Below, in pieces: positions 28,294-45,498 of a DNA stretch of 64,000 nt; position 1 is the first letter of the stretch, and each line of letters starts with the position of its first letter. Both the position numbers and the translations under genes were made by a program. This DNA is from Oopsacas minuta (lineage: Eukaryota; Animalia; Porifera): contig JAKMXF010000312.1 of the NCBI GenBank assembly GCA_024704765.1, forward strand, positions 62,001-126,000, written 5' to 3'. A model generated the notes under the pieces. The model was not told the DNA's origin. It did not search any database and worked only from the letters and a program-made list of their open reading frames with translations.

Positions 28294-28638
28294 ACTATTC
28301 TTCAGTTGTGGATATCATACTAATACTTACGTTTGTTGTTGTTTGTTGTTTATTTGTTGTTGTTATTATTTGTTTACGTGTTGTTATGCTAGGAAGATTG
28401 AACCTCTAGTTGTTGTGTAGTCCATTATTAGTAAATCTAATTTTATACTCATATATCCATATATGGTCATTGTCAGGGCTATATTGACAACAATAACTGG
28501 CTATAGGTATTTGAACTATATTCTGGGCCTATTTATACCCATTTTAACACCTTTTCGAATAGGTTCCAGTTGCAATTTAAGGTTTTTAACTAGTTTTGTT
28601 AATGCTCAGTTAGGTGTTAGATCCATATGTCACATAAA

Positions 28639-31600
28639 ATGGATGCCACACAAGTGGCACTACTCAGACAGTTCGTTAAAGTGGTAACTGCCAAACCTGA
28701 GATCTTACAGCTACCTGAGATGGGATTCTTCAAAGAGTGGCTGCTGAAGTTAGGCGCCACAATCCCAGAACCAGAACCAGTACCGGAACCAACTAAAGAG
28801 GAACATATGGAGACCTCCTCACCCCCTAAGGGGCCGACTAAAATACCCACTCAAGAGTCTCCTAAAAAAGAAGAAGCAACTGTAAGCATTCCTTAGTTAC
28901 AATAATGGCATATAAGAATGTATATCATAAGGTTAAAAGGCTAGCAATTGATTGGTTAGGATCTGTAGTGTATATTCAATCAAGTAAACCCTCACACTTG
29001 ATTGGTCTAGTTGTTACTATTAATAGATTTCTCTACTTTTAGCCGCCAGTTGTTGAGAGCTCATCAGAGTATGAGGAGTCTCCTGAATCAGATCTGGATC
29101 TAGACATGACAGGTGTTGTAGAGGAGGATATTATTCAGAACCAAGAGATGGGGGACCATAATAAAGAGGTGAGGGATTAGTCAAGGGACCATGGATACTC
29201 AAGAGGTCATTTATCATAAATGGCGGACAGTTGTATCCAGTAACCTGATAGCTCGATGGGTGTATCTGCTGACACCTTTTATAAATATCATGGATACAAT
29301 TTGATGTAATTGGAATTTACGAAAAGTGACCCTCTTCATGATCCATAGTCCCATTAGAGCGTCCATTTTTCATGCGATCTGCACCCTTGTAACCAGAGCG
29401 ACAGATTTATTTACACCCAAATATCTCCAAGAAAGTAGCATTCCAATCGCTCAAAAGACTTTGGTTGTTTGTTTGTTTGTTTGCTTGTTCATTTGGTTAA
29501 TTGTTAGGTAAGTGAGGAGGACATGGAGAAGGCAACAGAGCTACGGTCAGACGCTATGTCCAGGGCATCAGATGGTGACATAGAGGGTGCAGTTGCCATC
29601 TTCACAGAGGCTATTAAACTGAACCCTAGCTCTGCTCTACTCTACTCTAAGAGAGCTAGTTTATACATCAAGCTGTCCAGACCTAATGCTGCTATCAAGG
29701 ACACCACCGAGGTAATTGTGTATTCTATTGAAATGTGTCACTTTAATTCGATTAGTTACCCTGCTACTTGAATGCTAGCCCCTCACTGAGGGTGTGCAAA
29801 TACCAACGAGGTAACCATGGAAACTGGGACATAACACGTCACAGAAGTACGTTAGGGAGTTGGTGAATATAATGCTATGATTCATGCTATGTAATATGTA
29901 ATTATTCAAAAGTTCAATCGCAATATTAAACAAATATTCGCAGAATAATATTTACACAAAATATCCTTTAGTTTAATATTATTAGTTCCTATTAATAGCA
30001 TTACATTATACTATATTATGGAACTAATTAATGTATAATTTCAATAGCATATATTGTGTAATGTTATACTAGTATTATCCAGTATTCGTCAGGATTTGTA
30101 AGCAAATTTAACAAATAATAACAAACAAATAATAACATTACTGAAGACGAACAAGAGAAATTATCCAACAACTTATCCTGTGGGTTCAGTTATTTGTTTT
30201 GTATTATTGGTACCATTTAGTATAATTGGGCCAATTCGGGACTACCTTGGCCCATTTTAACTCGATTATTGGATGTTTGTATGGTCCCATTTCTGGCCAG
30301 GTGGTCTGCATTCCTGGTGGCTGTATCATATGTCCTACTTGTGGATTTGACCACTTAACAAGACCCATAGGGTCAATTATTGAGAGGTAAGGTCCCAACA
30401 GTATCCGACTAGAGGTGACAATACACCATTTATGGAATTATCTGAAGGTTAGATACATATCATATATTTTAATAACAAATATTCTAATCATAGTTACGGT
30501 TACTCTCAGCATCATAAATAGTCTGATAACCACTTGTGCCATCAACACCTATGTTCTGTCTCATATAAGGGAAACAAGATAGAGAGGTTCTGAATCCGTC
30601 AAGAATTAATCTGGCCACACTTCTTAAGTGGTCCGTATGATTTATCAATTTTAGTCCTCTGACACTCTGCTTGTACTTACAAACTGTTGCTATGGAGTAG
30701 AGTATAAGGAATGTGGCTATTATTAGAACTATCACTCCAACTAGGATGTACCAATTGCCCCAAATGCCAGCTGTAATAATATAACACCCCTGTTTAGTGG
30801 TTAATTGCAATACCACATTGTTATTTTGCAATCCGTCGAATTTGAATTGTGTCGCTGTTTCGCCATGTTGACACTTTATATACAATTCTGAGTGTTTGGT
30901 AGGTTTTTCACCTTGAGGTGTGAATTGAAACTGTGCCATAATTGTGCCGTAATCCTCTGTATTTGGAACTATAAACTTGACAGATTTTTGAGTACCCATT
31001 GAGTAGCTACCACTGCCACTTGTGACACAAATAGCATTATCATCTGATTTCATACAACCAGGCAAATCGAAGGATTGTTTGCAAGGAAAATACGAAAAAT
31101 TTTTAGTGCCATTTTCCGCAGTGAATTGTAGTCCTTCTAGGTTGCTAAGGTCAACTGTACCTTTGGAATGCTGGCATTTACAACTCGATAGGCGTTTACA
31201 CTCTTCCTTACCGCCGTAAACACAAACAAATAATGCGTAAAGTAAAAAGAACTCAAAAACAAACATCGAAAATTCTCAGCCTATCAAATTCATGCTTTTC
31301 TACCTACAAACTCAATTCCTATGGCTTCTACTCGTAACTAAGCAACCACAAATATTTGACATACTACATGATCTTTGAATTTACCCTTTATTGTACACAA
31401 CATTATCTGACACTTCCAAACGGCTATAAATACCCAAAACTCACTAAATTTTATGCAAAAAACTTCATATATTATCACTATGAAAATATTCAGAATACTC
31501 GCATACCTATCTCTCCTCACCGTTGCTATAGCAAACAAAGAGGAATGCAAAAAAATAACGAATTGTAAATGCCAGCATTCCAAAGGCATTGTTGATCTGT

Positions 31601-32378
31601 CAAGCATTTCTTCACAAGTTTTCACTACTATAAAAGATCAGATTATGTACAGGTATTTCCCGTGTAACCAAACGGAGAGCATGACCGCTAGTTGTAGCAA
31701 ATCGGACGACAATGCTGTCTGTCAGTTGGACCAGAAAACTAACCTGGTGCTGGACTGGGGACAGGAGGACAGTGTCTCGTTTCTGGTACCAAACAGCCAG
31801 GATTATAGTGTCACCATCGCTAAATTTGTGTCGAAAGACAATGAGCGGAAGACGGAACTATATCTTGCTTGTCCTAAAGAAGGTAAAGAGCCAGAGGGTC
31901 TCGAAGTTTTGGAGGTACAGGGACGGAATGTAGAGCTACGTCTCACTTCAAAAGCTGCCTGTTTCACACCTAACACTCCGACCAAACCCACAACCAAACC
32001 AACCACCAAACCAACCACTAAACCTGCCATTAAACCTACTACCAAGCCACCCACCAAGCCACCTGGTAAACCCACTAAATCGCCTCCTCCAATTTTTCAG
32101 TTCGACATAACGAGATTGGGACACTGGTATGGTCTCGTTGGACTTATCACTTTGTTCCTTAGTCTATTCTTCTTATATTTTGTAATCAGATTTGTGAATA
32201 AGTACAGAGGAAAGGGAAAGACCTATGGACCATTAGAGGGATGTTCCTATCCCATAGGTCTGTTCATTGACGGATTTTTGTGTGTGTGTTCTTGTTTCCC
32301 GTTTTGTAGAAATGCGATTGGGAGACGGACGGTTGAGTACCATGCCCTTCGTGCTGAGGAAGAATATGTAAACGGTCA

Positions 32379-32415
<37 letters not shown>

Positions 32416-35400
32416 AGCTATAATTCTATTAATAGTCATTACCATTAGTGATGTTGATCTGTTGACAGTTATTGAGTAATTGCATTTATTTGTGTATTGT
32501 TTATTTTAATTTAATAATAATAATAGTTAGCATGTGGAATGTTTAAGGTTTTTTTCTTACAAATAAATTCACAAATAAGTAAACAAACAAACAAAACAAA
32601 CAAAACAACAAGTTCCCTCCATTTATACATAATAATATATCTTTGATTCAATTATCATTTTACTAAGAGCAAATAAATAATAATAAATAATAATAAACAA
32701 CACAACAACACAACAACAATCATATAACACTAGATAACTCACTCCTAAAAGGAGAATAACAAGAAAATACAAACAAAAATCCATCTTTAAACAAATAAGG
32801 TGTTTCTCTCCAAAAACTAACATTAGGAATTATTTCAACACCTCGTGCTCCTCTCACACATATTTGGCATAAAAACCCACCAATAAAATAGACCAATAGG
32901 AATGTACCCCCTAGGACAACTAATAGAATGAATAACACCGGTTCATTCTCAATGGTAAAATGTCGTAATTTGATTGGACAAGCGTTCTCAGTCACTAATC
33001 TGAATTTTAACTTTTTTTCATCATATGACAGAATTGAAAATGTGTCGCCCTGTCTCTCTATGCCACTTGTACAAATTGCCTCCACAGTCACAATTATATC
33101 TCTGTTTGTGTATATCACACTTGTTGTGAAATGTGTCGTATTTGATATTATATTGAATTCTACGTTTGTTTGTGTAGCAATTACATAATACTTCTCTACT
33201 TTTGTTATTGTCTCTTTGAGACATAAACTTGCTTTGCTATTCTTTGTACATACTTTAGTGTTCCAATCTGCTAAAATTGCGCAAGGATAATACCTATGAA
33301 GACAATAATAACAACAATAATGAGTGTGTAATTCACAGACAATTATTATTAATTCAATCAATTGATTCGTATACAAAATTGCAAAATAATTATTATTTCG
33401 AACTATTATAATAATTGCTATGGAATTGCCAATTAATTCCTAATATTATACCAATTATAATCCCGTGATTCTTGTCGTATTTTAGTGATGGAGTTTTCGA
33501 ATAATCTATTGCTCCTAGAACTTTGGGACGACGCGTACTGTTCGAAAAGATGTCAGCAATACAGAATTTCATATGGTAGTAATTTCCTAGCCCAATTAGA
33601 TTTGAGGGTTCACCCAGTACGTAATATAGGCTCACATTATATTCGTTCAAATAATTGTACAAATTACGTCATGGTTTGTTATGCCTATCTGAGAAACTGA
33701 TTGGTTTATAATATACTCTAAAATACAGAAAACAGAAGTCGACTGTATTTCTATAGAATTGTATTATCCATAGTCCAAAACATGAACTTACTTATATTCC
33801 AAATATGTTCCATTCATGTGATGATGCGCTATGAAATATTTTCCTCTCAGTTTTGATAGATCCACCTTCTCGCGAGATTTATAGACACAAGAACAGCTGT
33901 TAATTCGCCTACAAACCTCACTCAATACAGTTTGTATGCAAACTATAAATAGTATCAATGTTGTTATCTGCATCTATAAACATACAAGAATGTATCCAGC
34001 TGCAAAATGCAGTCAACTCCTGTTAGATGAAACACGGATATAGTGAAGTCTTAATTGTACAAATATGGTCACAAACCGTCAAAGTAACATATATCCCATC
34101 AGATATATTAAAGTGGGTATCAGGGCCCCTTTGATATAACAGGAGTTTACTGTAAATATTCGAGATTTTAAATATCTAATTAATATCTTAAAACACCTCT
34201 CAGAGAGGTGACGAATATCTAACCCAATCTAATTGCGATTTAATCGTCTTATTAAATATTTGGAAAAGCTATTCTAATCTTAAAATGTTACAAAAGTGTA
34301 TCTGTTGGTTACATCCAGGCTCAATTGGTTATTCCTCTTTTAAGAATAATTTACAATATCTTGTCATTACTATCCTATGTGTTCTACTTCCCCTGTCACG
34401 CATAGTATTACATATTTGTCCAGCTAATCAGTGGATTCAACCCTTTGATAATACAACTGATATATCTATATTTGACAAACACAAGACCCCAGCTTCCTAA
34501 TAGTTATGTTACATAAACTCATTCAAACGGTGCGTGGGTATCCCTATATAAATGTGAGGGAAAAATTGTTTGTGAGTTATTATCCAAGTTTAAATACACA
34601 AAAACACGTAAATTCAATACAGTTTTATTTTTTTGATATATGAAATGTTGATATTTTCACACCTTCAAGAGCCAATTCAAATCCTACTAATCCTATTCCT
34701 TGCTTATCTCATAACTTGGATTATTTGTCTTTTGATAACTATATTATTTGTGTGTACTTTAAGCGCCATATTAATTATCACCCTTTTAAGAGGCAGAGAA
34801 TATTCACATATATTAAGAGTACATAACACCTCGCTCCATTTCCTATTCCACATATGTCTTGTGCCTCTATACTCAATGCTTGGAGTGCCACTTGCAATAT
34901 TTTACGTCATTTTGGCTACAATTTTGAACTTTGGGTTGCTGTTTTGGACACTAACTTGGATGTTATACTCAAAGATATTGACACTATTCTTTGAGACAAA
35001 AACCAATATTGTATCTTACAAATCATTCGAACGTGCGAACTCAGCAAAATCAGATGAATGCTATCAATTGAAACAGCTGGTCTTAAAAAAACACATTTGA
35101 GGATTTTACACCTTTTGTATGCTATTTATACTTTGTTATTTGTTATGTCAAGTTATATATTAAACAGGAAATATAGGAATGTGTACCTTGAGTGTCTGTG
35201 GGATTGTAGGAACATGTGTGGTCCAAATAATCTACTGTTATTATCTAATCAAACCTCCCCCGAGCGGGTAAAATAGCTTTAGCGAATTCCTAGTCCCTTA
35301 CAGATGATCTTTCATAAACGCGGTAGTATTTTGGGCGTCCCTGACTGGCCTAGCTTATCCATGGTTCAGTAATGCAAGCAAATCGTGCGTATAGATAAAT

Positions 35401-38400
35401 CTGTGGAGGTAACACTGAATTTCTATCAGGTCATGATAGAAGCTTCGCTATTAATCTGTACGCACGATTTGCTTTGTATTACTGAACCATGGATAAGCTA
35501 GACATTATGTGAGCAATAATTCTTCTAATCGCATTAACAGATCGTATAGTAGTTTTGTTTACCTTTCTCAATAAACACAAACAACAAATTCACATATAAC
35601 TTGAATATTGTACGCACAATTCTCTGTTAGATATTTATACTATTCCCATCCACAATGTGAATCAACCAGCTGATAATCACGTGAATATTTGCATTGTTGA
35701 ATATATGAAATTTATAATAGGTGTAGGGAAGGCTATCTTCAAAATATATACCTGTCTTATTGTCATGAATATATGCATATGAGTACATTAAAGGGGCGAT
35801 TTGCACCTAGGGCAGGTGATTTACTGAGGATATAATCTTCACACCTTTTTCATCACGGTATTTCTCATATTTTTAGGAATTTGAAGTGGCATAATATGTG
35901 GCAGCCTGACACACACCATTCGGCCATAGCGACACCAAATTCTTACTGATACAATATAGTGTAGTATAGTTCTAAATATAGAACACGTGATAGGGTATTG
36001 AGTATCCATTAGGGACATATATATTGTTTGAGAGTGTATTAGCACACAAATGAATTATTTAGGAATAATACTAACAGTGTGCCTGCTTAACACTGTATTC
36101 ACTCAGGAGGTTAAAAAAGTGGGAGATTGTGTCTGGGCCACTTCTGACCTCACACTTGACCTGAGAGACTTTGGATTTTTGGAATACGATAACCCTTCAG
36201 GAGTAGCTACCTACAGGTATTACCCATGTACCATTAACGCTGATTGGGATCCTGATAACTGTGCTATTCGAAATAAACCCGCACTTTGCCAGGAGAACTA
36301 TGAGGCTGTGACATATATAGTCGGTAAGCAAGAAACTGCAAGTGTGAAAATAGTGTCGAAGGACACATTTGAATTAACATATACTGATGGTAATGATGGT
36401 AGAAAAGGAGTTGTCACTCTAAGTTGTTTCCAAAATTCAGATGAATTCAAGTTTGATTATGAGGAGTATCCTACTTATTTCTTTTCTATGAGTGTAGAGA
36501 ATGCTTGTAAGAGTGAGGGATACCCCGGGGGGTCTACAGGAGGAGATGATGGAGGGTTCGCGTTATTCATAATCCTAGTGCTCGCGTCTATCTTCGCCGT
36601 GACAACGTATATTGTAGGAGGAATGCTGTTTATGTATTTGCATAAGAAAGAGAGAGGAATTGGATTAATACCAAATCTAGCTTTCTGGAAAGATTCCCCA
36701 TTTCTATTCAGAGACGGATTCTTGTTTACTTTCTCATTTATCCCGCAGGTCAGAGAGTACATGAAGGATCACATTAAAGAGGATTACTCCAAAGTACCCA
36801 GTTAATATTGTTTGTATTTACTTGTTGTTTGTATTGTTATTATTAGAGTAGTAATTACATGTTGTACATATATTTCACTTTGAAACGGTCAAGGTTGCAA
36901 TGCTCTCCTTTGATTTGAGACATACAAAGTCTTAATGACTTCCTCCATATCTATAAATAACCAGAAGGCATATTTTAACACCTCCCTTAATTAATCATAT
37001 GACAGAAATTCTAAGAAAATAGCACATTTTCTACTGAATTAATAACTAAGAATAGAAGTATAGTTCTATAATATAGAACACGTGATAGGGTATTGAGTAT
37101 CCATTAGGGACATATATATTGTATGAGAGTGTATTAGCACACAAATGAATTATTTTGGAATAATACTAACAGTGTGTCTGCTTAACACTGTATTCACTCA
37201 GGAGGTTAAAAAAGTGGGAGATTGTGTCTGGGCCACTTCTGACCTCACACTTGACCTGAGAGGAATTGATTTCGTACAGGACTTCGATGACAATAACCCA
37301 GCCACCTACAGGTATTATCCTTGCAAGATAGAGTCGAATTGGGATGATACAGAGTGTACTGTCAGTAAGCAGACAGCTCTCTGCCAGGAGTATCATGGAA
37401 GTAAATATCTAATTGGGAGACTAAATCAAGTTAGCGTTAAGTTAATTAAGGAAAATACTTTTGAGTTAAAGTATAGCGGAGGTAGCAAGAGTCGAACCGG
37501 AACAGTAACGTTAACCTGCTTCCAGAATTCGGACAGTTTTGCGTTCGTTCGAGAAGAAAGTGACCCTTTTAGATATTACTTCAGTATGAGCGTGAGTACT
37601 GCTTGCAAAAATGGAGTGCCCGGGGGGTCTACAGGAGGGGATGATGGAGGATTCGCGTTATTCATAATCCTAGTGCTCGTGTCTATCTTCGCCGTGACAA
37701 CGTATATTGTAGGAGGAATGCTGTTTATGTATTTGCATAAGAAAGAGAGAGGAATTGGATTAATACCAAATCTAGCTTTCTGGAAAGATTCCCCATTTCT
37801 ATTCAGAGACGGATTCCTGTTTACTTTCTCATTTATCCCGCAGGTCAGAGAGTACATGAAGGATCACATTAAAGAGGGTTACTCCAAAGTACCCAGTTAA
37901 TATAGTTTGTATTTACTTGTTGTTTGTATTATTATTATTATAGTAATAGTTTTACTGTTAAATGCGACAAATACCAATACCATTGTGCCTTCAAGGAGTC
38001 CCTGAGGTCTGACTGGGCATATATGTTGCTCACCATGGCACGAGCACTCAGGTCTCCTTTCATAACTTAATAATAATAAATAATGTTATAATAATGACAA
38101 TACAAACAAACAAGTAAATACAAACAATATTAACTGGGTACTTTGGAGTAATCTTCTTTGATGTGATCCTTCATGTACTCTCTGACCTGCGGGATAAATG
38201 AGAAAGTAAACAAGAATCCGTCTCTGAATAGAAATGGGGAATCTTTCCAGAAAGCTAGATTTGGTATTAATCCAATTCCTCTCTCTTTCTTATGCAAATA
38301 CATAAACAGCATTCCTCCTACAATATACGTTGTCACGGCGAAGATAGACGCGAGCACTAGGATTATGAACAACACGAATCCTCCATCATCCCCTCCTGTA

Positions 38401-41400
38401 GACCCCCCGGGCACTCCATTTTTGCAAGCAGTACTCACGCTCATACTGAAGTAATAATTAATAGGGTAATTTTCTTCTCGAACGAACGCAAAACTGTCCG
38501 AATTCTGGAAGCAGGTTAACGTTACTGTTCCGGTTCGACTGTTGCTACCTCCGCTGTAAATCAACTCAAAAGTATTTTCCTTGATCAAGTTAACGCTAAC
38601 TTGATTTAGTCTACCAATTAGATAATTACTTCCCCCATACTCCTGGCAGAGAGCTGTCTGCTTACTGACAGTACACTCTGTATCATCCCAATTCGACTCT
38701 ATCTTGCAAGGATAATACCTGTAGGTGGCTGGGTTATTGTCATCGAAGTCCTGTACGAAATCAATTCCTCTCAGGTCAAGTGTGAGGTCAGAAGTGGCCC
38801 AGACACAATCTCCCACTTTTTTAACCTCCTGAGTGAATACAGTGTTAAGCAGACACACTGTTAGTATTATTCCAAAATAATTCATTTGTGTGCTAATACA
38901 CTCTCATACAATATATATGTCCCTAATGGATACTCAATACCCTATCTTGTGTTCTATATTTAGAACTATACTTCTATTCTTAGTTATTAATTCAGTAGAA
39001 AATGTGCTATTTTCTTAGAATTTCTGTCATATGATTAATTAAGGGAGGTGTTAAAATATGCCTTCTGGTTATTTATAGATATGGAGGAAGTCATTAAGAC
39101 TTTGTATGTCTCAAATCCAAGGGTCTATCAAAGGAGAGCATTGCAACCTTGACCGTTTCAAAGTGAAATATATGTACAACAATTACTTAGTACTTTAATA
39201 ATGACAATACAAACAAACAAGTAAATACAAACAATATTAACTGGGTACTTTGGAGTAATCTTCTTTGATGTGATCCTTCATGTACTCTCTGACCTGCGGG
39301 ATAAATGAGAAAGTAAACAAGAATCCGTCTCTGAATAGAAATGGGGAATCTTTCCAGAAAGCTAGATTTGGTATTAATCCAATTCCTCTCTCTTTCTTAT
39401 GCAAATACATAAACAGCATTCCTCCTACAATATACGTTGTCACGGCGAAGATAGACGCGAGCACTAGGATTATGAATAACGCGAACCCTCCATCATCCCC
39501 TCCTGTAGACCCCCCGGGGATTCCCCCACTCTTACAAGCATTCTCTACACTCATAGAAAAGAAGTAAGTAGGATAGACCTCATAATCAAACTTGAATTCA
39601 TCTGAATTTTGGAAACAACTTAGAGTCACCTTCCCCTCTCTACCCGAAAAGCCTCCCTCGTAAGACAACTCAAAAGTGTCCTTTGTGAGTGACTTAACGC
39701 TTACTGTGTTGAGCTTACCTACAATGTAAATGGACCCGTCTTGGTGGTTTTTCTGGCAGAGTGCCGGCTTGTTATCAGCGGTACAACCATATTGACTCCA
39801 ATCAGAGTTTATCTTACAGGGATAATATCTGTATGTAGCTTGGCTAAAATCATCGTCGTATTCTAAAAATCCAAAGTCTCTCAGGTCAAGTGTGAGGTCA
39901 GAAGTGGCCCAGACACAATCTCCCACTTTTTTAACCTCCTGAGTGAATACAGTGTTAAGCAGACACACTGTTAGTATTATTCCAAAATAATTCATTTGTG
40001 TCCTAATACACTTTCATACAATATATATGTCCCTAATGGATACTCAATACCCTATCACGTGTTCTATATTTAGAACTATACTACACTATTCCATGATTTG
40101 GATTATCTTAACATTATTTTGAGAATTGAATGACTATAATCTCCGTGGTGAACATTTCTAATCCAAGAATATGTGTGGAGATATTCTAATGCTTAATTCT
40201 TGTATATATATTAATTTTACTAATAACAAGTAAACAAACAAACAACAAATAATAAGGGTATCAAACTTAGATACCATCTGGTAAATTATTATAATTCCTT
40301 GCGGCTGTCTGTCTGGTATTCTCCAACCCTCCCATAAGTTTTACATGCAGTCTTAACACTCATGCTAAAATGATATATTGGAAATACTTCATAATCAAAG
40401 TAGAATACGTCATCATCTTGGAAGCATGTAATGGTGACTATCCCTTTTCTATTATTATTTCCTCCAAAGTACATCAATTCGAAAGTGTACGGTTTCACTA
40501 AGGTGACAACCAGCTGACTTTGATTACCAATTAAGTGAGTAGGACCTTGATACTTCTGACAGAGAGCAGGGTTGTTTCCGATCGTGCATACACTCGGGTC
40601 CCAATTAGAGTACACTTTGCAAGGATAATACCTGAAAGTTCCTGGGTTGTTATGATTGAAATATTCGAAAAAATACAAATCTGTCAGGTCAAGTGTGAGG
40701 TCAGAAGTGGCCCAGACACAATCTCTCACTTTTTTAACCTCCTGAGTGAATACAGTGTTAAGCAGACACACTGTTAGTATTATTCCAAAATAATTCATTT
40801 GTGTGCTAATACACTCTCAAACAATATATATGTCCCTAATGGATACTCAATACCCTATCACGTGTTCTATATTTAGAACTATACCATCACGACTTTAGTA
40901 TTGCACTATACCCAAATGGCCTTCTTTACAATCACAGCTTATTAAATCAACAGAATTCTAAATACCATTTGCCTCGTAGCGAAACTAAGCAACAAACCGC
41001 AAAGATGTTATTTAAGTTGTTAGAAACCAAACGTGTGCAAGTGTGGTGGGAGGTGTTAAATAGTGGCATGCCGGTCATACAGTTGAATTGCCCTAGGCCA
41101 AAGTGGTCAGGACATGGTCTGACTTATCTAACCATGTGTGTCACTCTGATGTCACATGGCTGTAACACAATCCACATCAGAGTATGCTTCAGTTAATATA
41201 TATAAACTCAAATTACAGAAGAAAAGTTACAATTCAAATGTATTGTATTATTCTTATACTAATTCTTGTCCCCCTAGCCAATGGTGCTAATTATAACTGC
41301 TCCTCTCAGACCCCGTGTTCCTGTAACCTCAAGGGAGTGGGGAATATGAACCTAACAGGTGTTAAGTTCCATAACAACCAAACATACGTAGAATCATTTG

Positions 41401-44133
41401 GATTTGATGGGTTCAGGTATAGATATTATCCTTGTGGTGCTGGTGGTCCATGGGGTAACGGAGACTGTAAGAAAGGGGACACAACCTGCCAGTACACTGG
41501 AGACGAGGGGTACTTCTCTCTGGGAACAGCTGTTAGATATGTTATATCACAGGCAGTGAGTGATAAACACATGCCATATGTTAGTTTTAGTTACTATGGT
41601 GGAACTAAGGGAAGGGCATCAACTGTGGAAATTATTTGTGACCCAGCGAGTTCTGTTGATAAATTGCAATTTATGGGTGAATATCCCACGCATGCGTATA
41701 ACTTCAAGTTAAATACAGTTAAGTTTTGCCCCAATATATCACCTCTATTCTGACGCAGTTTGTAAAGTATTTTGTTGTTGTTGTTGATATTATAAATTAA
41801 CTAAAATACACATATGATTACAATATATTTATAAACTAATATTTAGCTGGGCATTTTCTCATAATCTTCTTCAATTGTTTTCTTCAAATATTTTCTAACA
41901 AAAGGTATACAAGAAAATACAAACAAAAAACCATCAAAAAATAGGAACGGTGCTATTATCCAGAAACCGATATTCGGGATCAGTCCCAATCTTCGTTCTC
42001 CTTTGCATGCCATAATTCCAACACCAATGCCTAAGTATAGTATCAATCCAACTGGTAGCGTCACCATGAGAACAATGAATAATATATTACCTATTGGGGC
42101 GTCGGGTTGTTTATACAAACAAGCTTTAGGTGTCATAAATACAAAATTGTAGTTTATTATAGGACTCTCTGAGATGAATTTCAACTCATGAGACCCTCTA
42201 ATATCACACATAACTCTAACGGTAGCATTCCTTCTTCCATTAATAAAATCTGAGGTCCCATCTTGGAATAGAAAATCGAAATATGTATTGTCCCCCTTGG
42301 CAACAGCTCTAGTTATCTCGTAACTATTAGACTTACCGAGGACGTAATATTCACCGTCCCTGGTTTGTTGGCAGACAGCTGGGTGGTTTTCGATGGTACA
42401 AACTCCACCCCAATCAGCTTTAACCCCGCATGGATAATATCTATACGTGTAGACCCCTGATGTGATCTCTATATAGTCCAATCCACCTCCGCTACCCGCC
42501 AGATTCAATAGCCCAGCTGATTTAAGATTACATGTACACGCGGATTCCAATGTACAGTTTTCGTTGCTAGCGTATGATTGTGCAGCTATTAATAGTAACA
42601 CAATGATTTGAAAAATACCAAACATTTAAATATTCGATTAGACTGTATTGGACTATTTATTAGGTTTTTTGGTATATTAAATTTCAAATCTATTTTAATA
42701 TTATCTCATCGAATAGATTATTATTCTAATTATACTCATTTAGTTCCAATTGGAACCTATTTTGTATATGTTGATTGAGGAAATCGTAATACGTAGTGTA
42801 ACCTCCACAGACATGGTGTCAGGTACTCCGAAATTGCTACCCTGTTCCTCCTTTATGGAGGTTCATTTTCATGGGACTAGGGATTCGCTTTATTTATCAC
42901 CTCGTTTCCAGTAATTTAACACCTTTTGTTTGGTTCTGTTTCTGGTCAAGTGACCAGATTAACTGGTGTCTGTAATATACGGAGTATCCGGTACGTATTT
43001 CTGATACCGTTATATATTCGTATAATTACTCTGTCTATGAGCTGTTAATATCATTTGATATATTGCCTAACCTTATTAGGTGTCACATGGCTGTAACACA
43101 ATCCACATCAGAGTATGCTTCAGTTAATATATAAACTGGAATTACAGAAGAATAGTTATAATTCAAATGTATTGTATTATTCTTATGCTAATTCTTGTCC
43201 CCCTAGCCAATAGTGCTAATGTCAACTGTTCCACTGAAACGGCGTGTTCCTGTGACCTTAAGGGGGTTGGGATCATGAGCTTACACGGGAAGAGATTCAA
43301 CAAAGAAAGTTACGTTGAGACATTGGGAAGTGACAAGAACACGTATAGATATTACCCTTGTGGTGTTGATAAAAATTGGGAGGGTGGCTGTACAACAGCT
43401 TCTACAATATGTCAGTATAGTGCGGCTGACGGATTGTATCACTCAATAGGGGAAACGAATACCTTTCAGGTGATAGAAGCAGTTGGCGATGGCGACAAAC
43501 CTTATATTAAATTCATGTACACGGGGGGAACAGATGATCGTGAATCCAATGTAAAAATTATTTGTGAACCCAAGAGTACTCAAGATACGCTAGTGTTCTT
43601 AGGCGAGTTTACTACTAAGACATATGATATAGAAATGACTACTGCTAAAATATGTCCGAATGCTAACCCAACACCTTCAGGTGGTGGTGGTGGTCCTGAC
43701 ATCCCAGCTCTGTTTATTTTAGTCCTATTAGTTCTATTTTTAGCCACAATCACGTATATAGTTGTTGGCGTGTTGTTGATGGTATTTTGGAAAGGGGCAA
43801 GAGGTCTTGAAGTGATTCCAAATCTGTCTTTTTGGAAAGATTTCCCATTTTTGTTTAAAGATGGAGTCTTGTTTTCATTTGCATACATTCCTGCTGCTCG
43901 ATCTCGTATCGGGGGAGAGAAGAGTTATTCACAACTCAAGTGATTGTTTGTTTACTTGTTTGTTTACATTTTATTAGCTTTTATTTTGTATATATTTTTG
44001 TTTATCATTATCATTAATAAATAAGTTATCTGATATCCCCGGGGTGTATGAATCCATAGTCTTATACCTGAAGCTATCAAAACAAGCACTATTTATCTAA
44101 TAATATATTCTACAAACAAACAAACAAACAAAC

Positions 44134-44165
<32 letters not shown>

Positions 44166-45498
44166 TTTATATTGTTAAATCTAGGCAATCAATTTGAATC
44201 CTGATTCAGCACAGGGTTATAAATGGCGTGGAAGGGCTCATGCTATGCTAGGACACTGGGCAGAATCTGCTAAAGATTTACAGACAGCTCTCAAGCTAGA
44301 CTATGATGAAGATGTGAGTTATAATTTGTAATACATATACGGTATGGAAGTCCTAGCCGAGTATTCGCGTGCCTACAGGCGCGATTGAATGAAAAAATAT
44401 ACAGGAGATGCTGGTTATAAGAACCTATTGAGGCAGAGGAAGCAGCTTCCTCTCGCTATTTCGTGCGTAGCCTCATCGTAATCGCCATTATATTGAGGCA
44501 AATATCCCATCCTTGCCTCCTCGCTCTGGTATCTCTAGTTACCCGCAGAGAACATACCAGATATACGCACTATCTCTGGAAAACGGTTCTCATATATTCC
44601 TGTATACTATACCGGTTCTAAGCACATAAATTGCTACTCCCAAGGGTGTTCTTATAATATCCGCTGTACTGTATTCAGAATGTGTAATGTTATTAACACC
44701 TCTTAAGTGAATTATGTATAATTAGGCAAATGAATGGCTTAAAGAAATAAAGACTAAATCTGATAGAATAAGAGAGCATACTCAAAAGCAGGAGAGGAAG
44801 TCTAGAGAGAAGGAAACATATATGAGAAAGAAGAGAGTTAAGAGAGCAAAAAGACAATATGACGCGGTATTATTATTTATAATATTTATCATTTGTTTGA
44901 ATTCTGATAAATAACAACAAATAGCAACCATTGTCACATGCGGAATACACTCCCTGTATCCGAATAGAAAATGAGATACTTTCGATTTCAATTTTCACAT
45001 TCCTGGACAAACGCGAGTTTTCCCTAATAGGTGACAATATTTTGGACCATGAGGTCATTTTAGAGGATCGATTAGCGAAGAATCAATGAAGTTTATACAC
45101 GCCATTTTTAGGATAAGAAAGCTGAGGAAGAAAGAATGAAATCAATGCCATCTGGAGCGGGTGGTTACCCAAGTGGCATGGGTGGTGGCCCGCCAGGAGG
45201 AGGAGGAGGTATGCCACCTGGCATGAATGACATATTTAACGACCCAGAATTGATGGAACTTATGCAAGACAAAGAAGTGATGGAAGCTTTCCAAGATTGT
45301 GCCTCCGATCCTTCGAAACTTTCTAAATATGCCAACAATCCTAGAGTTATGAAAGCAATGCAAAAAATGCAAGAAAAAATAGGAGGCCTAGGGGGCATGG
45401 GGGGCATGGGAGCAGGTCCCACGGGGGGCATGGGGGCAGGTCCTATGGGGGGTATGGGTGCAGGTCCAAGCCCCATGAGTGATGACATGCCAGATTAG
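28639..45498 (+). CDS. ST13: Hsc70-interacting protein (Hip): dimerisation domain, acidic region, TPR, GGM repeats, STI1/DP domain
   Basis: Exons 28639-28881, 29043-29168, 29508-29711, 44185-44313, 44726-44866, 45112-45498, all joined by phase-0 introns. The TPR reads through the 14,473-bp intron (…[10 protein letters not shown]|[19 protein letters not shown]…KLDYDED), followed by FNDPEL…NNPRV. Confidence 0.93.
30484..31266 (-). CDS. MRH-domain type-I membrane protein (M6PR/ATG27-like), divergent
   Basis: Signal peptide, C.....C.C....G.VDL, YFPC, TM, RGLKLI…DGF tail, YQTI motif. Confidence 0.8.
   Translation of the reverse strand: MFVFEFFLLYALFVCVYGGKEECKRLSSCKCQHSKGTVDLSNLEGLQFTAENGTKNFSYFPCKQSFDLPGCMKSDDNAICVTSGSGSYSMGTQKSVKFIVPNTEDYGTIMAQFQFTPQGEKPTKHSELYIKCQHGETATQFKFDGLQNNNVVLQLTTKQGCYIITAGIWGNWYILVGVIVLIIATFLILYSIATVCKYKQSVRGLKLINHTDHLRSVARLILDGFRTSLSCFPYMRQNIGVDGTSGYQTIYDAESNRNYD
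31480..32448 (+). CDS. MRH-domain membrane protein with a PTTK mucin-like stalk and poly-Asn tail
   Basis: ATG 31480 (MKIFRIL), [25 protein letters not shown], (PTTK)n, TM, LFIDGF, YHAL, (AAC)n. Confidence 0.82.
32720..33973 (-). CDS. MRH-domain membrane protein, two exons (33973-33792, 33293-32720)
   Basis: The signal peptide/CRRINSCSC exon joins through a phase-2 GT-AG intron to K|YYPC. TM followed by [26 protein letters not shown]. Confidence 0.82.
34645..35100 (+). CDS. Possible small multi-TM protein, unassigned
   Basis: ~150-aa open, strongly hydrophobic ORF; no family motif recognised. Confidence 0.35.
   Translation: MLIFSHLQEPIQILLILFLAYLITWIICLLITILFVCTLSAILIITLLRGREYSHILRVHNTSLHFLFHICLVPLYSMLGVPLAIFYVILATILNFGLLFWTLTWMLYSKILTLFFETKTNIVSYKSFERANSAKSDECYQLKQLVLKKHI
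35351..35500. mobile_element. MITE with ~46-bp TIRs and TA flanks (Tc1/mariner-type)
   Basis: ta|gcttatccatggttcagtaatgcaagcaaatcgtgcgtatagat … atctgtacgcacgatttgctttgtattactgaaccatggataagc|ta. Confidence 0.7.
36050..36805 (+). CDS. MRH-domain membrane receptor, copy A
   Basis: 251 aa: signal peptide, [50 protein letters not shown]. Confidence 0.9.
   Translation: MNYLGIILTVCLLNTVFTQEVKKVGDCVWATSDLTLDLRDFGFLEYDNPSGVATYRYYPCTINADWDPDNCAIRNKPALCQENYEAVTYIVGKQETASVKIVSKDTFELTYTDGNDGRKGVVTLSCFQNSDEFKFDYEEYPTYFFSMSVENACKSEGYPGGSTGGDDGGFALFIILVLASIFAVTTYIVGGMLFMYLHKKERGIGLIPNLAFWKDSPFLFRDGFLFTFSFIPQVREYMKDHIKEDYSKVPS
37145..37900 (+). CDS. MRH-domain membrane receptor, copy B
   Basis: 251 aa, same termini as copy A. 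Confidence 0.9.
   Translation: MNYFGIILTVCLLNTVFTQEVKKVGDCVWATSDLTLDLRGIDFVQDFDDNNPATYRYYPCKIESNWDDTECTVSKQTALCQEYHGSKYLIGRLNQVSVKLIKENTFELKYSGGSKSRTGTVTLTCFQNSDSFAFVREESDPFRYYFSMSVSTACKNGVPGGSTGGDDGGFALFIILVLVSIFAVTTYIVGGMLFMYLHKKERGIGLIPNLAFWKDSPFLFRDGFLFTFSFIPQVREYMKDHIKEGYSKVPS
38130..38885 (-). CDS. MRH-domain membrane receptor, copy B'
   Basis: 251 aa, inverted near-copy of B. Confidence 0.9.
   Translation of the reverse strand: MNYFGIILTVCLLNTVFTQEVKKVGDCVWATSDLTLDLRGIDFVQDFDDNNPATYRYYPCKIESNWDDTECTVSKQTALCQEYGGSNYLIGRLNQVSVNLIKENTFELIYSGGSNSRTGTVTLTCFQNSDSFAFVREENYPINYYFSMSVSTACKNGVPGGSTGGDDGGFVLFIILVLASIFAVTTYIVGGMLFMYLHKKERGIGLIPNLAFWKDSPFLFRDGFLFTFSFIPQVREYMKDHIKEDYSKVPS
39237..39995 (-). 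CDS. MRH-domain membrane receptor, copy A'
   Basis: 252 aa, inverted relative of A. Confidence 0.9.
   Translation of the reverse strand: MNYFGIILTVCLLNTVFTQEVKKVGDCVWATSDLTLDLRDFGFLEYDDDFSQATYRYYPCKINSDWSQYGCTADNKPALCQKNHQDGSIYIVGKLNTVSVKSLTKDTFELSYEGGFSGREGKVTLSCFQNSDEFKFDYEVYPTYFFSMSVENACKSGGIPGGSTGGDDGGFALFIILVLASIFAVTTYIVGGMLFMYLHKKERGIGLIPNLAFWKDSPFLFRDGFLFTFSFIPQVREYMKDHIKEDYSKVPS
40289..40798 (-). CDS. MRH-domain protein without TM (predicted secreted), A/B subfamily
   Basis: Same promoter and first 38 aa as A/B, complete MRH domain, stop 17 codons after the last Cys. Confidence 0.75.
   Translation of the reverse strand: MNYFGIILTVCLLNTVFTQEVKKVRDCVWATSDLTLDLTDLYFFEYFNHNNPGTFRYYPCKVYSNWDPSVCTIGNNPALCQKYQGPTHLIGNQSQLVVTLVKPYTFELMYFGGNNNRKGIVTITCFQDDDVFYFDYEVFPIYHFSMSVKTACKTYGRVGEYQTDSRKEL
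41238..41753 (+). CDS. MRH-domain protein without TM (predicted secreted), relative of the 43167 gene
   Basis: ATG 41238 (MYCIIL); shares ~90 bp of upstream sequence and the signal peptide with 43167; ends [10 protein letters not shown]. Confidence 0.78.
   Translation: MYCIILILILVPLANGANYNCSSQTPCSCNLKGVGNMNLTGVKFHNNQTYVESFGFDGFRYRYYPCGAGGPWGNGDCKKGDTTCQYTGDEGYFSLGTAVRYVISQAVSDKHMPYVSFSYYGGTKGRASTVEIICDPASSVDKLQFMGEYPTHAYNFKLNTVKFCPNISPLF
41843..42625 (-). CDS. MRH-domain membrane receptor
   Basis: 260 aa: [26 protein letters not shown]…FFDGF, YEKM. Confidence 0.88.
   Translation of the reverse strand: MFGIFQIIVLLLIAAQSYASNENCTLESACTCNLKSAGLLNLAGSGGGLDYIEITSGVYTYRYYPCGVKADWGGVCTIENHPAVCQQTRDGEYYVLGKSNSYEITRAVAKGDNTYFDFLFQDGTSDFINGRRNATVRVMCDIRGSHELKFISESPIINYNFVFMTPKACLYKQPDAPIGNILFIVLMVTLPVGLILYLGIGVGIMACKGERRLGLIPNIGFWIIAPFLFFDGFLFVFSCIPFVRKYLKKTIEEDYEKMPS
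43167..43943 (+). CDS. MRH-domain membrane receptor, closest to the canonical CD-M6PR/ATG27 tail
   Basis: 258 aa: [47 protein letters not shown]. Confidence 0.9.
   Translation: MYCIILMLILVPLANSANVNCSTETACSCDLKGVGIMSLHGKRFNKESYVETLGSDKNTYRYYPCGVDKNWEGGCTTASTICQYSAADGLYHSIGETNTFQVIEAVGDGDKPYIKFMYTGGTDDRESNVKIICEPKSTQDTLVFLGEFTTKTYDIEMTTAKICPNANPTPSGGGGGPDIPALFILVLLVLFLATITYIVVGVLLMVFWKGARGLEVIPNLSFWKDFPFLFKDGVLFSFAYIPAARSRIGGEKSYSQLK

Follow-up and report, generated by a model that had tools for sequence, protein, structure and literature searches.

A probable lineage-specific inverted duplication with block-limited homogenisation in an MRH lectin gene cluster of the sponge Oopsacas minuta

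In a 64,000-nucleotide stretch of the Oopsacas minuta (Porifera) genome (GenBank assembly GCA_024704765.1, contig JAKMXF010000312.1, positions 62,001 to 126,000 of the forward strand; hereafter the window, in whose numbering all positions are given), four genes for predicted membrane lectins (A, B, B', and A') form a 4.1-kb mirror-image duplication, and a truncated fifth unit (C') lies beyond it. The locus probably reflects an inverted duplication specific to the O. minuta lineage within a tandem cluster of intronless MRH genes, combined with non-allelic conversion among the five units that is limited to two blocks. This reading builds on four observations: the anatomy of the palindrome, the family and fold of the encoded proteins, the contrast in divergence between parts of the same genes, and the absence of the mirror from related loci.

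Structure of the palindrome

When the left half was compared by gapped BLAST with the reverse-complemented right half, the left arm (35956–37942, plus strand, genes A and B) aligned with the right arm (40089–38087, minus strand, genes B' and A') in inverted orientation, with 92.2% identity over 2009 aligned columns (E = 0). A repeat search of the window listed an inner ungapped arm pair (37070–37921 and 38109–38960; 852 nt, 97% complementary) together with a set of outer inverted pairs, all of which are merged into one alignment by the gapped BLAST. The symmetry centre lies at ~38015, and the palindrome is the sole inverted duplication of at least 150 nt in the window, which has a G+C content of 36–37%. 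In a sliding count over 50 columns the outer edge is abrupt (14/50 identical left of 35950, 45/50 from 35950), identity between the arms is unbroken (50/50) at 36547–36746 and 36934–37383, and there is a single trough of low identity (27–36/50 at 36200–36396). The differences, at ~8% of positions, comprise a divergent 207-nt patch, in-frame and intergenic indels of 3 and 12 nt, and arm-specific variants beside both junctions.

Genes A (36050–36805, plus strand), B (37145–37900, plus strand), B' (38130–38885, minus strand), and A' (39237–39995, minus strand) are all open, intact, and intronless, and encode proteins of 251 aa (252 aa for A'); B and B' are identical at 239 of 251 residues, and A and A' at 214 of 251. 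The mirroring includes the 94 nt upstream of the genes and the A–B intergenic DNA (36858–37056, plus strand), which is 98% identical to 38974–39184 apart from a 12-nt indel. The repeated blocks described below are also shared in direct orientation, by A and B and by B' and A'. The arrangement A> B> <B' <A', described in an earlier note on this DNA as a 4-kb palindrome centred at ~38015, is thus confirmed by the repeat search and by BLAST of the window against itself, and the same applies to its inverted promoters and intergenic DNA and to the closer similarity of the inner gene pair; the spacer, put at ~170 bp in that note, measures 144 nt (37943–38086). This spacer is unique, and residual symmetry was absent from it (412 of 500 shuffles scored equal or higher); it was considered as a clue to a fold-back origin and dropped because of this lack of internal symmetry.

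Protein family and predicted function

Based on sequence and on a structure model, we identify the four genes as encoding putative type I membrane lectins of the P-type (MRH) group that resemble the cation-dependent mannose-6-phosphate receptor (CD-MPR, M6PR). All four proteins match the Pfam families ATG27 (PF09451; E = 8.5e-15 to 4e-12, 47–56 bits, cut-off 27) and Man-6-P_recep (PF02157; E = 7.5e-10 to 5e-8, 33–39 bits, cut-off 25.4). In an AlphaFold model built from a 12-sequence alignment, the ectodomain has predicted local distance difference test (pLDDT) values of 84–93 per 10-residue block, and there is a single long helix (residues 168–197). The best PDB matches of the ectodomain in Foldseek are all CD-MPR (E = 2e-8, TM-score on the target 0.56–0.63), after which the list continues with CI-MPR domains, OS-9/XTP3-B, and GNPTG. 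Four residues (Gln81, Arg117, Glu137, and Tyr144) are invariant across the 12 family members in the alignment and are matched by the corresponding conserved Gln, Arg, Glu, and Tyr in domains 3 and 9 of CI-MPR; we take this quartet, following the MRH literature, to be the contacts to the sugar, mannose 6-phosphate. The likeness to CD-MPR comprises the Pfam matches, the fold, the quartet, and the type I topology with one transmembrane helix, and the proteins would be expected to bind glycans and to be trafficked in a CD-MPR-like manner. The cytosolic tail contains a conserved Phe-Trp pair (LAFWKD), which presumably resembles the CD-MPR sorting motif, and a terminal YSKV (YxxPhi-like), both of which may act as sorting signals. 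The CD-MPR tail ends in an acidic dileucine. Unlike CD-MPR, the sponge genes form a multi-copy, intronless, lineage-expanded cluster in which the quartet is surrounded by a variable surface and variable loops, YSKV terminates the tail, and some copies are without a membrane anchor.

Codon differences between B and B' number 21 (12 non-synonymous, 9 synonymous), 14 of which lie in the ectodomain core, with 12.5 non-synonymous to 5.5 synonymous differences there. Residues 87, 99, 109, and 115 of B are Lys and residue 143 is Arg, whereas the corresponding residues of B' are Asn, Asn, Ile, Asn, and Asn; four of the changes fall at residues 139–143, between the invariant Glu137 and Tyr144. These replacements suggest a shifted binding surface. 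Positive selection was considered for this pair, but the counts are too small for such a claim (core ratio of non-synonymous to synonymous divergence, dN/dS, 0.57; 3' core 5 non-synonymous to 0 synonymous).

Constant blocks and variable core

The five units were aligned and identity was measured by segment; synonymous and non-synonymous differences were counted by the Nei–Gojobori method, and contrasts were assessed by Fisher test. The 5' constant block, which in A comprises 94 nt upstream and 118 nt of coding sequence (35956–36167, plus strand), recurs at 37057–37262 (plus), 38768–38972 (minus), ~39878–40089 (minus), and ~40681–40884 (minus), and among all five units is 92–99% identical in its upstream 94 nt and 96.6–100% identical in its 118 nt of coding sequence. 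The 3' constant block, which in A covers stalk, transmembrane segment, tail, and ~50 nt after the stop codon (36524–36850, plus strand), recurs at 37619–37945 (plus), 38089–38411 (minus), and 39196–39518 (minus); among the four full units the last ~265 nt of coding sequence are 97–99% identical, and the next ~50 nt are 92–98% identical. The cores between these blocks are just 52–64% identical between the A, B, and C' types. No further copies of the blocks were found in the whole 61.5-Mb assembly (365 contigs) beyond three local places.

Synonymous differences between A and B amount to 61/77 in the core (proportion of differing synonymous sites, pS, 0.79) versus 3/83 in the blocks (pS 0.04; p = 5e-25), and those between A and A' to 40/49 in the 5' core (pS 0.82) versus 8/84 in the rest (pS ~0.10; p = 2e-17). 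Inside single genes, synonymous divergence is 0–0.08 in the terminal blocks and saturated in the core, and dN/dS in the core is 0.18–0.57, without an overall excess of replacement changes. Nearly all differences between A and A' fall within one patch in the 5' half of the core (36190–36396, plus strand, with its partner in A' at ~39646–39855), which is ~60–64% identical and saturated at synonymous sites; the 3' half of the core is common to both. A (or A') is a historical mosaic, and the sole chimeric ectodomain visible at the locus. The N-terminal block is ~100% identical within the genome, and 18 of its 38 residues (~47%, counted by hand from the alignment) match those of the related protein P0006.

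These contrasts in sequence strongly support homogenisation of the blocks by repeated copying between units, as gene conversion or an equivalent exchange. Such copying, presumably by conversion, is the sole economical explanation, because differences at synonymous and non-coding sites would persist under purifying selection that acts on the protein. The most similar pair in the 3' block is B' and A', neighbours in the same arm (99.1% over 323 nt); three of the four informative sites in this block (columns 833, 839, and 897) group A with B and A' with B'; and C', beyond the palindrome, carries the 5' block. Since similarity of the blocks is just as high between same-arm neighbours and extends to a unit beyond the palindrome, homogenisation is not arm-specific. 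The suggestion that arm-to-arm conversion maintains the copies is accordingly retained for conversion, to which the pS contrast and the homogenised flanks point, and given up for its restriction to exchange between arms. Mirror-specific similarity is confined to the A–B intergenic DNA (98%), the B core (94–96%), and the 3' half of the A core (90%).

The 5' constant block also contains a CACGTG E-box ~65 nt before the ATG (35984–35989 in A, with the equivalent in each unit) and a TATA-like CATATATATT ~30 nt before the ATG. B' alone reads CACAAG at the E-box position (near 38940), and regulation of the inner pair B and B' may differ through this change.

Related loci and polarity of the duplication

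A word-based homology search recovered relatives at 50–54% identity, and the five related loci, in four ENA samples, have ~50–60% protein identity to the O. minuta genes. Their contigs are syntenic with the window, with Fam20C and ELP2 on one side and Hip exons on the other. In the word-based search the O. minuta proteins themselves occurred on one contig only, and no exact match to the B or B' protein was found on independent contigs or transcripts in the searched set, to which the source genome possibly does not belong. All five loci contain one or two full copies of the subfamily, some with an extra truncated or frameshifted copy, and in all five every copy is direct, in the orientation of B', A', and C' relative to the flanking genes. 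No inverted self-match of at least 100 nt was detected in the five related loci. The palindrome was found in none of the five related loci, and in the constant blocks of O. minuta mirror partners were no closer than same-arm neighbours. Because the five syntenic loci hold direct copies only, the mirror would have arisen in the O. minuta lineage.

A' is the best-matching O. minuta copy for every relative and has the shortest branch in the core tree. In the relatives, the tandem copies are followed by a conserved small gene (155 aa). In the window its orthologue occupies 34645–35094 (52% identity, E = 1e-44), immediately to the left of the plus-strand arm. Given that this gene adjoins the plus-strand arm and that the relatives' copies have the B'/A' orientation, the left arm (A and B) would be an insertion, in derived orientation, between the ancestral neighbours (the 155-aa gene and B'), and the right arm would retain the ancestral orientation, so that duplication would have proceeded from B'–A' to A–B. 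Segment trees were considered as a means of dating the cores before the species split and were set aside, as the O. minuta cores all group apart from those of the relatives.

The relatives vary in copy number, and partial homogenisation (90–95%) extends to their own tandem copies. The number of subfamily copies differs between L017 and L026, two contigs of one sample (ERZ25069837; 256x and 12x coverage), and one copy in L018 (9005–9749) is frameshifted; array turnover appears quick.

Proposed history and alternatives

Based on these comparisons, we posit that the ancestral array was one-directional, with C', A', and B' running towards the conserved 155-aa gene, and that the two-gene A'–B' module was copied head-to-head beside B', leaving the unique 144-nt spacer. 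Non-allelic conversion among all five units, between arms and same-arm neighbours alike, would then keep two blocks near identical: the first with the promoter, signal peptide, and first ~20 mature residues, and the second with the stalk, membrane span, cytosolic tail, and ~50 nt of 3' flank. Conversion would stop sharply at the edges of the ectodomain core, which would diverge around the invariant Gln/Arg/Glu/Tyr quartet.

Several points weigh against this history. The relatives are too distant to fix when the inversion arose and in what order the events took place. A search of the 61.5-Mb assembly found no donor for the divergent 5' core in either A or A'; either the split between these two genes is old, with flanks re-homogenised later, or a donor was lost or is unsampled. 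In the mirror-specific segments, recent duplication and arm-to-arm conversion cannot be told apart. G+C content at third codon positions (GC3) is uninformative in the comparison of blocks and core, with no signal of biased conversion. Lastly, the palindrome configuration rests on a hybrid SPAdes assembly of PacBio and Illumina data, with subsequent scaffolding, gap filling, and polishing (PMC10280926).

The mirror could accordingly be an assembly artefact, produced either by a fold-back chimera or by head-to-head joining of two haplotypes of a direct A'–B' array. The assembly combined several individuals (PMC10280926), and the constant blocks (~210 and ~320 nt) exceed the largest k-mer (99). 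However, fold-back chimeras are perfect palindromes without a spacer, whereas these arms are separated by a unique and asymmetric one and differ at ~8% of positions, including a 207-nt patch that is ~60% identical, the 3- and 12-nt indels, and arm-specific variants adjacent to the junctions, with four ORFs (open reading frames) that are intact and distinct. A mis-join of haplotypes would have to be accompanied by another one exactly at 35956, where the left edge runs into the syntenic single-copy 155-aa gene and not into a C' allele. We regard an artefact as very unlikely, and as slightly less improbable than a plain recent inverted duplication without conversion, in which purifying selection on signal peptide, transmembrane segment, and tail would keep the ends identical. 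Selection certainly acts on the C-terminal block, the protein sequence of which is conserved between species; yet selection does not remove synonymous differences, which are few in the blocks and saturated in the core of the same genes, and does not account for the 92–99% identity among paralogues in non-coding DNA (94 nt upstream, ~50 nt downstream). Moreover, the N-terminal block, identical within the genome, has changed between species at roughly half of its residues, and C', outside the duplication, has the 5' block too. Selection alone is thus an extremely unlikely explanation.

On the functional reading that follows from the earlier note, the palindrome would be a device, whereby inversion or recombination would diversify the receptors, possibly somatically, and read-through from B into B' would give a hairpin feeding RNA interference (RNAi) or ADAR. 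Inverted repeats of 850 nt with 97% identity can indeed recombine, and A and A' testify to a historical mosaic. However, the constant blocks bracket the whole variable core, so that crossovers within them would swap intact cores between identical ends and yield no new protein; the chimeric ectodomains expected from recombination between conserved blocks do not follow. Crossovers that create new proteins need the cores, which are 52–64% identical except in A/A' (3' half) and B/B'. Among the ORFs of the cluster neither a recombinase nor a recombination signal is evident, although no dedicated search was run, and direct copies suffice in the relatives. For the hairpin, a transcript across the centre is predicted to fold almost perfectly, with a stem of ~640 bp (a piece of 1431 nt reaches −1171 kcal/mol). 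Genes with an A_deamin domain, several for Argonaute/Piwi, and RNase III genes of Dicer/Drosha size are present in the genome, and the intron of Hip/ST13 that hosts the cluster holds both arms (see below). A distance of 229 nt separates the stop codons of B and B', and no canonical poly(A) hexamer was found downstream of B' on the minus strand before B; B, however, is followed after 175 nt by AATAAA within the spacer (38075–38080, plus strand), the sole canonical signal near the centre. With this signal after B and none of canonical form after B', the proposed read-through from B to B' may occur but gained no support here. Overall, we consider it improbable that the palindrome serves as such a device, and retain lineage-specific inverted duplication with block-limited conversion as the likely history.

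Position within the Hip/ST13 gene

The MRH cluster comprises 11 genes (30484–43943), including the palindrome, and lies inside an intron of Hip/ST13, ~14.4 kb long, which interrupts the TPR domain. Plus-strand exons of the host gene flank the cluster: a HipN exon (28627–28893) and a TPR exon (29508–29762) upstream, and a TPR exon (44185–44319) and an STI1-DP exon (45112–45495) downstream. The nesting is conserved in related assemblies (L017, L018, and L025). Five of the nested genes share the strand of the host, and host transcription must therefore pass their 3'-end signals. As the cluster is in an intron of this plus-strand gene, the host pre-mRNA would, if Hip/ST13 is one transcription unit, contain both arms, and might form a hairpin that is processed; as a source of hairpin RNA this is more compelling than read-through between B and B'. 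A further-reaching version is that every Hip pre-mRNA folds a ~2-kb stem that is diced or A-to-I edited, with small RNAs from the constant blocks matching all five paralogues, such that dosage control of the cluster is tied to Hip transcription, or Hip splicing is coupled to the cluster; we consider this quite improbable, if a little less so than an assembly artefact. The nesting nevertheless leads to a testable prediction, namely intronic double-stranded RNA.

Comparison with known systems

Sex-chromosome palindromes of primates and mouse are maintained by arm-to-arm gene conversion (PMC8600007, PMC8327919, bioRxiv 10.1101/800185). The sponge locus shares with them inverted arms, a unique spacer, coding genes in both arms, and non-allelic conversion. 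Those palindromes, however, have arms from more than ~8–10 kb up to megabases, identities of more than 99%, testis-expressed genes, and conversion between arms, whereas the sponge locus has 2-kb arms of 92% identity (97% over the inner 852 nt), and thus falls short in both size and identity, encodes lectin receptors, and has conversion that would be confined to two blocks and act equally on direct neighbours and on the outside unit C'. The hsp-16 pair-of-pairs of Caenorhabditis elegans and the inverted Hsp70 pairs of Drosophila consist of a kilobase-scale module in head-to-head arrangement with a short unique centre, and undergo concerted evolution; their arms are near identical throughout, and the genes are stress genes. 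In its head-to-head module the sponge locus is closer to these than to sex-chromosome palindromes, but differs from them in a variable core that escapes homogenisation.

Constant ends with a variable middle, shaped by segmental conversion, are found in MHC genes, the sea-urchin 185/333 (Trf) genes, and conotoxin precursors. Like these, the sponge genes have a homogeneous leader and trailer, a divergent putative recognition part, a tandem cluster, and copy number that varies between relatives; unlike these, there are only five units, and core dN/dS is 0.18–0.57. The locus fits ordinary concerted evolution of a tandem family, in which the mosaic is the textbook signature of block-limited conversion and no new mechanism is required; it does not overturn current understanding. 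A description of sponge MRH clusters or of this locus was not found in the literature. The locus offers a small, clean, fully sequenced case, in an early-branching animal, of inverted duplication with block-limited conversion, the outcome of which would be receptors with fixed trafficking and expression modules and divergent predicted sugar-binding surfaces. Should these proteins turn out to be lectins for pattern recognition or sorting, the sponge would be diversifying a recognition family without dedicated machinery.

Other features of the cluster

The truncated unit C' (40289–40798, minus strand) encodes 169 aa without a membrane anchor, its 5' constant block extending to 40884. It retains a GT-rich 3' element, as might be left after transmembrane segment and tail were lost by internal deletion. 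On the sense strand, 11 of 24 ORFs have GT-rich runs of the TTGTTTG type after the stop codon, and such runs also occur after the relatives' genes (L017 and L018); they may represent a 3'-end element in glass sponges. As a general terminator against read-through this element was rejected, the enrichment (11/24 ORFs versus ~0.22 expected per 120 nt) being too weak.

In addition to C', an anchor-less MRH copy is present at 41184–41753 (plus strand) in O. minuta, and anchor-less copies occur at the equivalent position in a related assembly (L017, 8241–8717; L026, 1570–2046). A direct repeat (41150–41439 and 43081–43365; 82% over 291 nt) is shared by the truncated gene at 41184 and the full one at 43167, and represents a further partial duplication within the MRH cluster.

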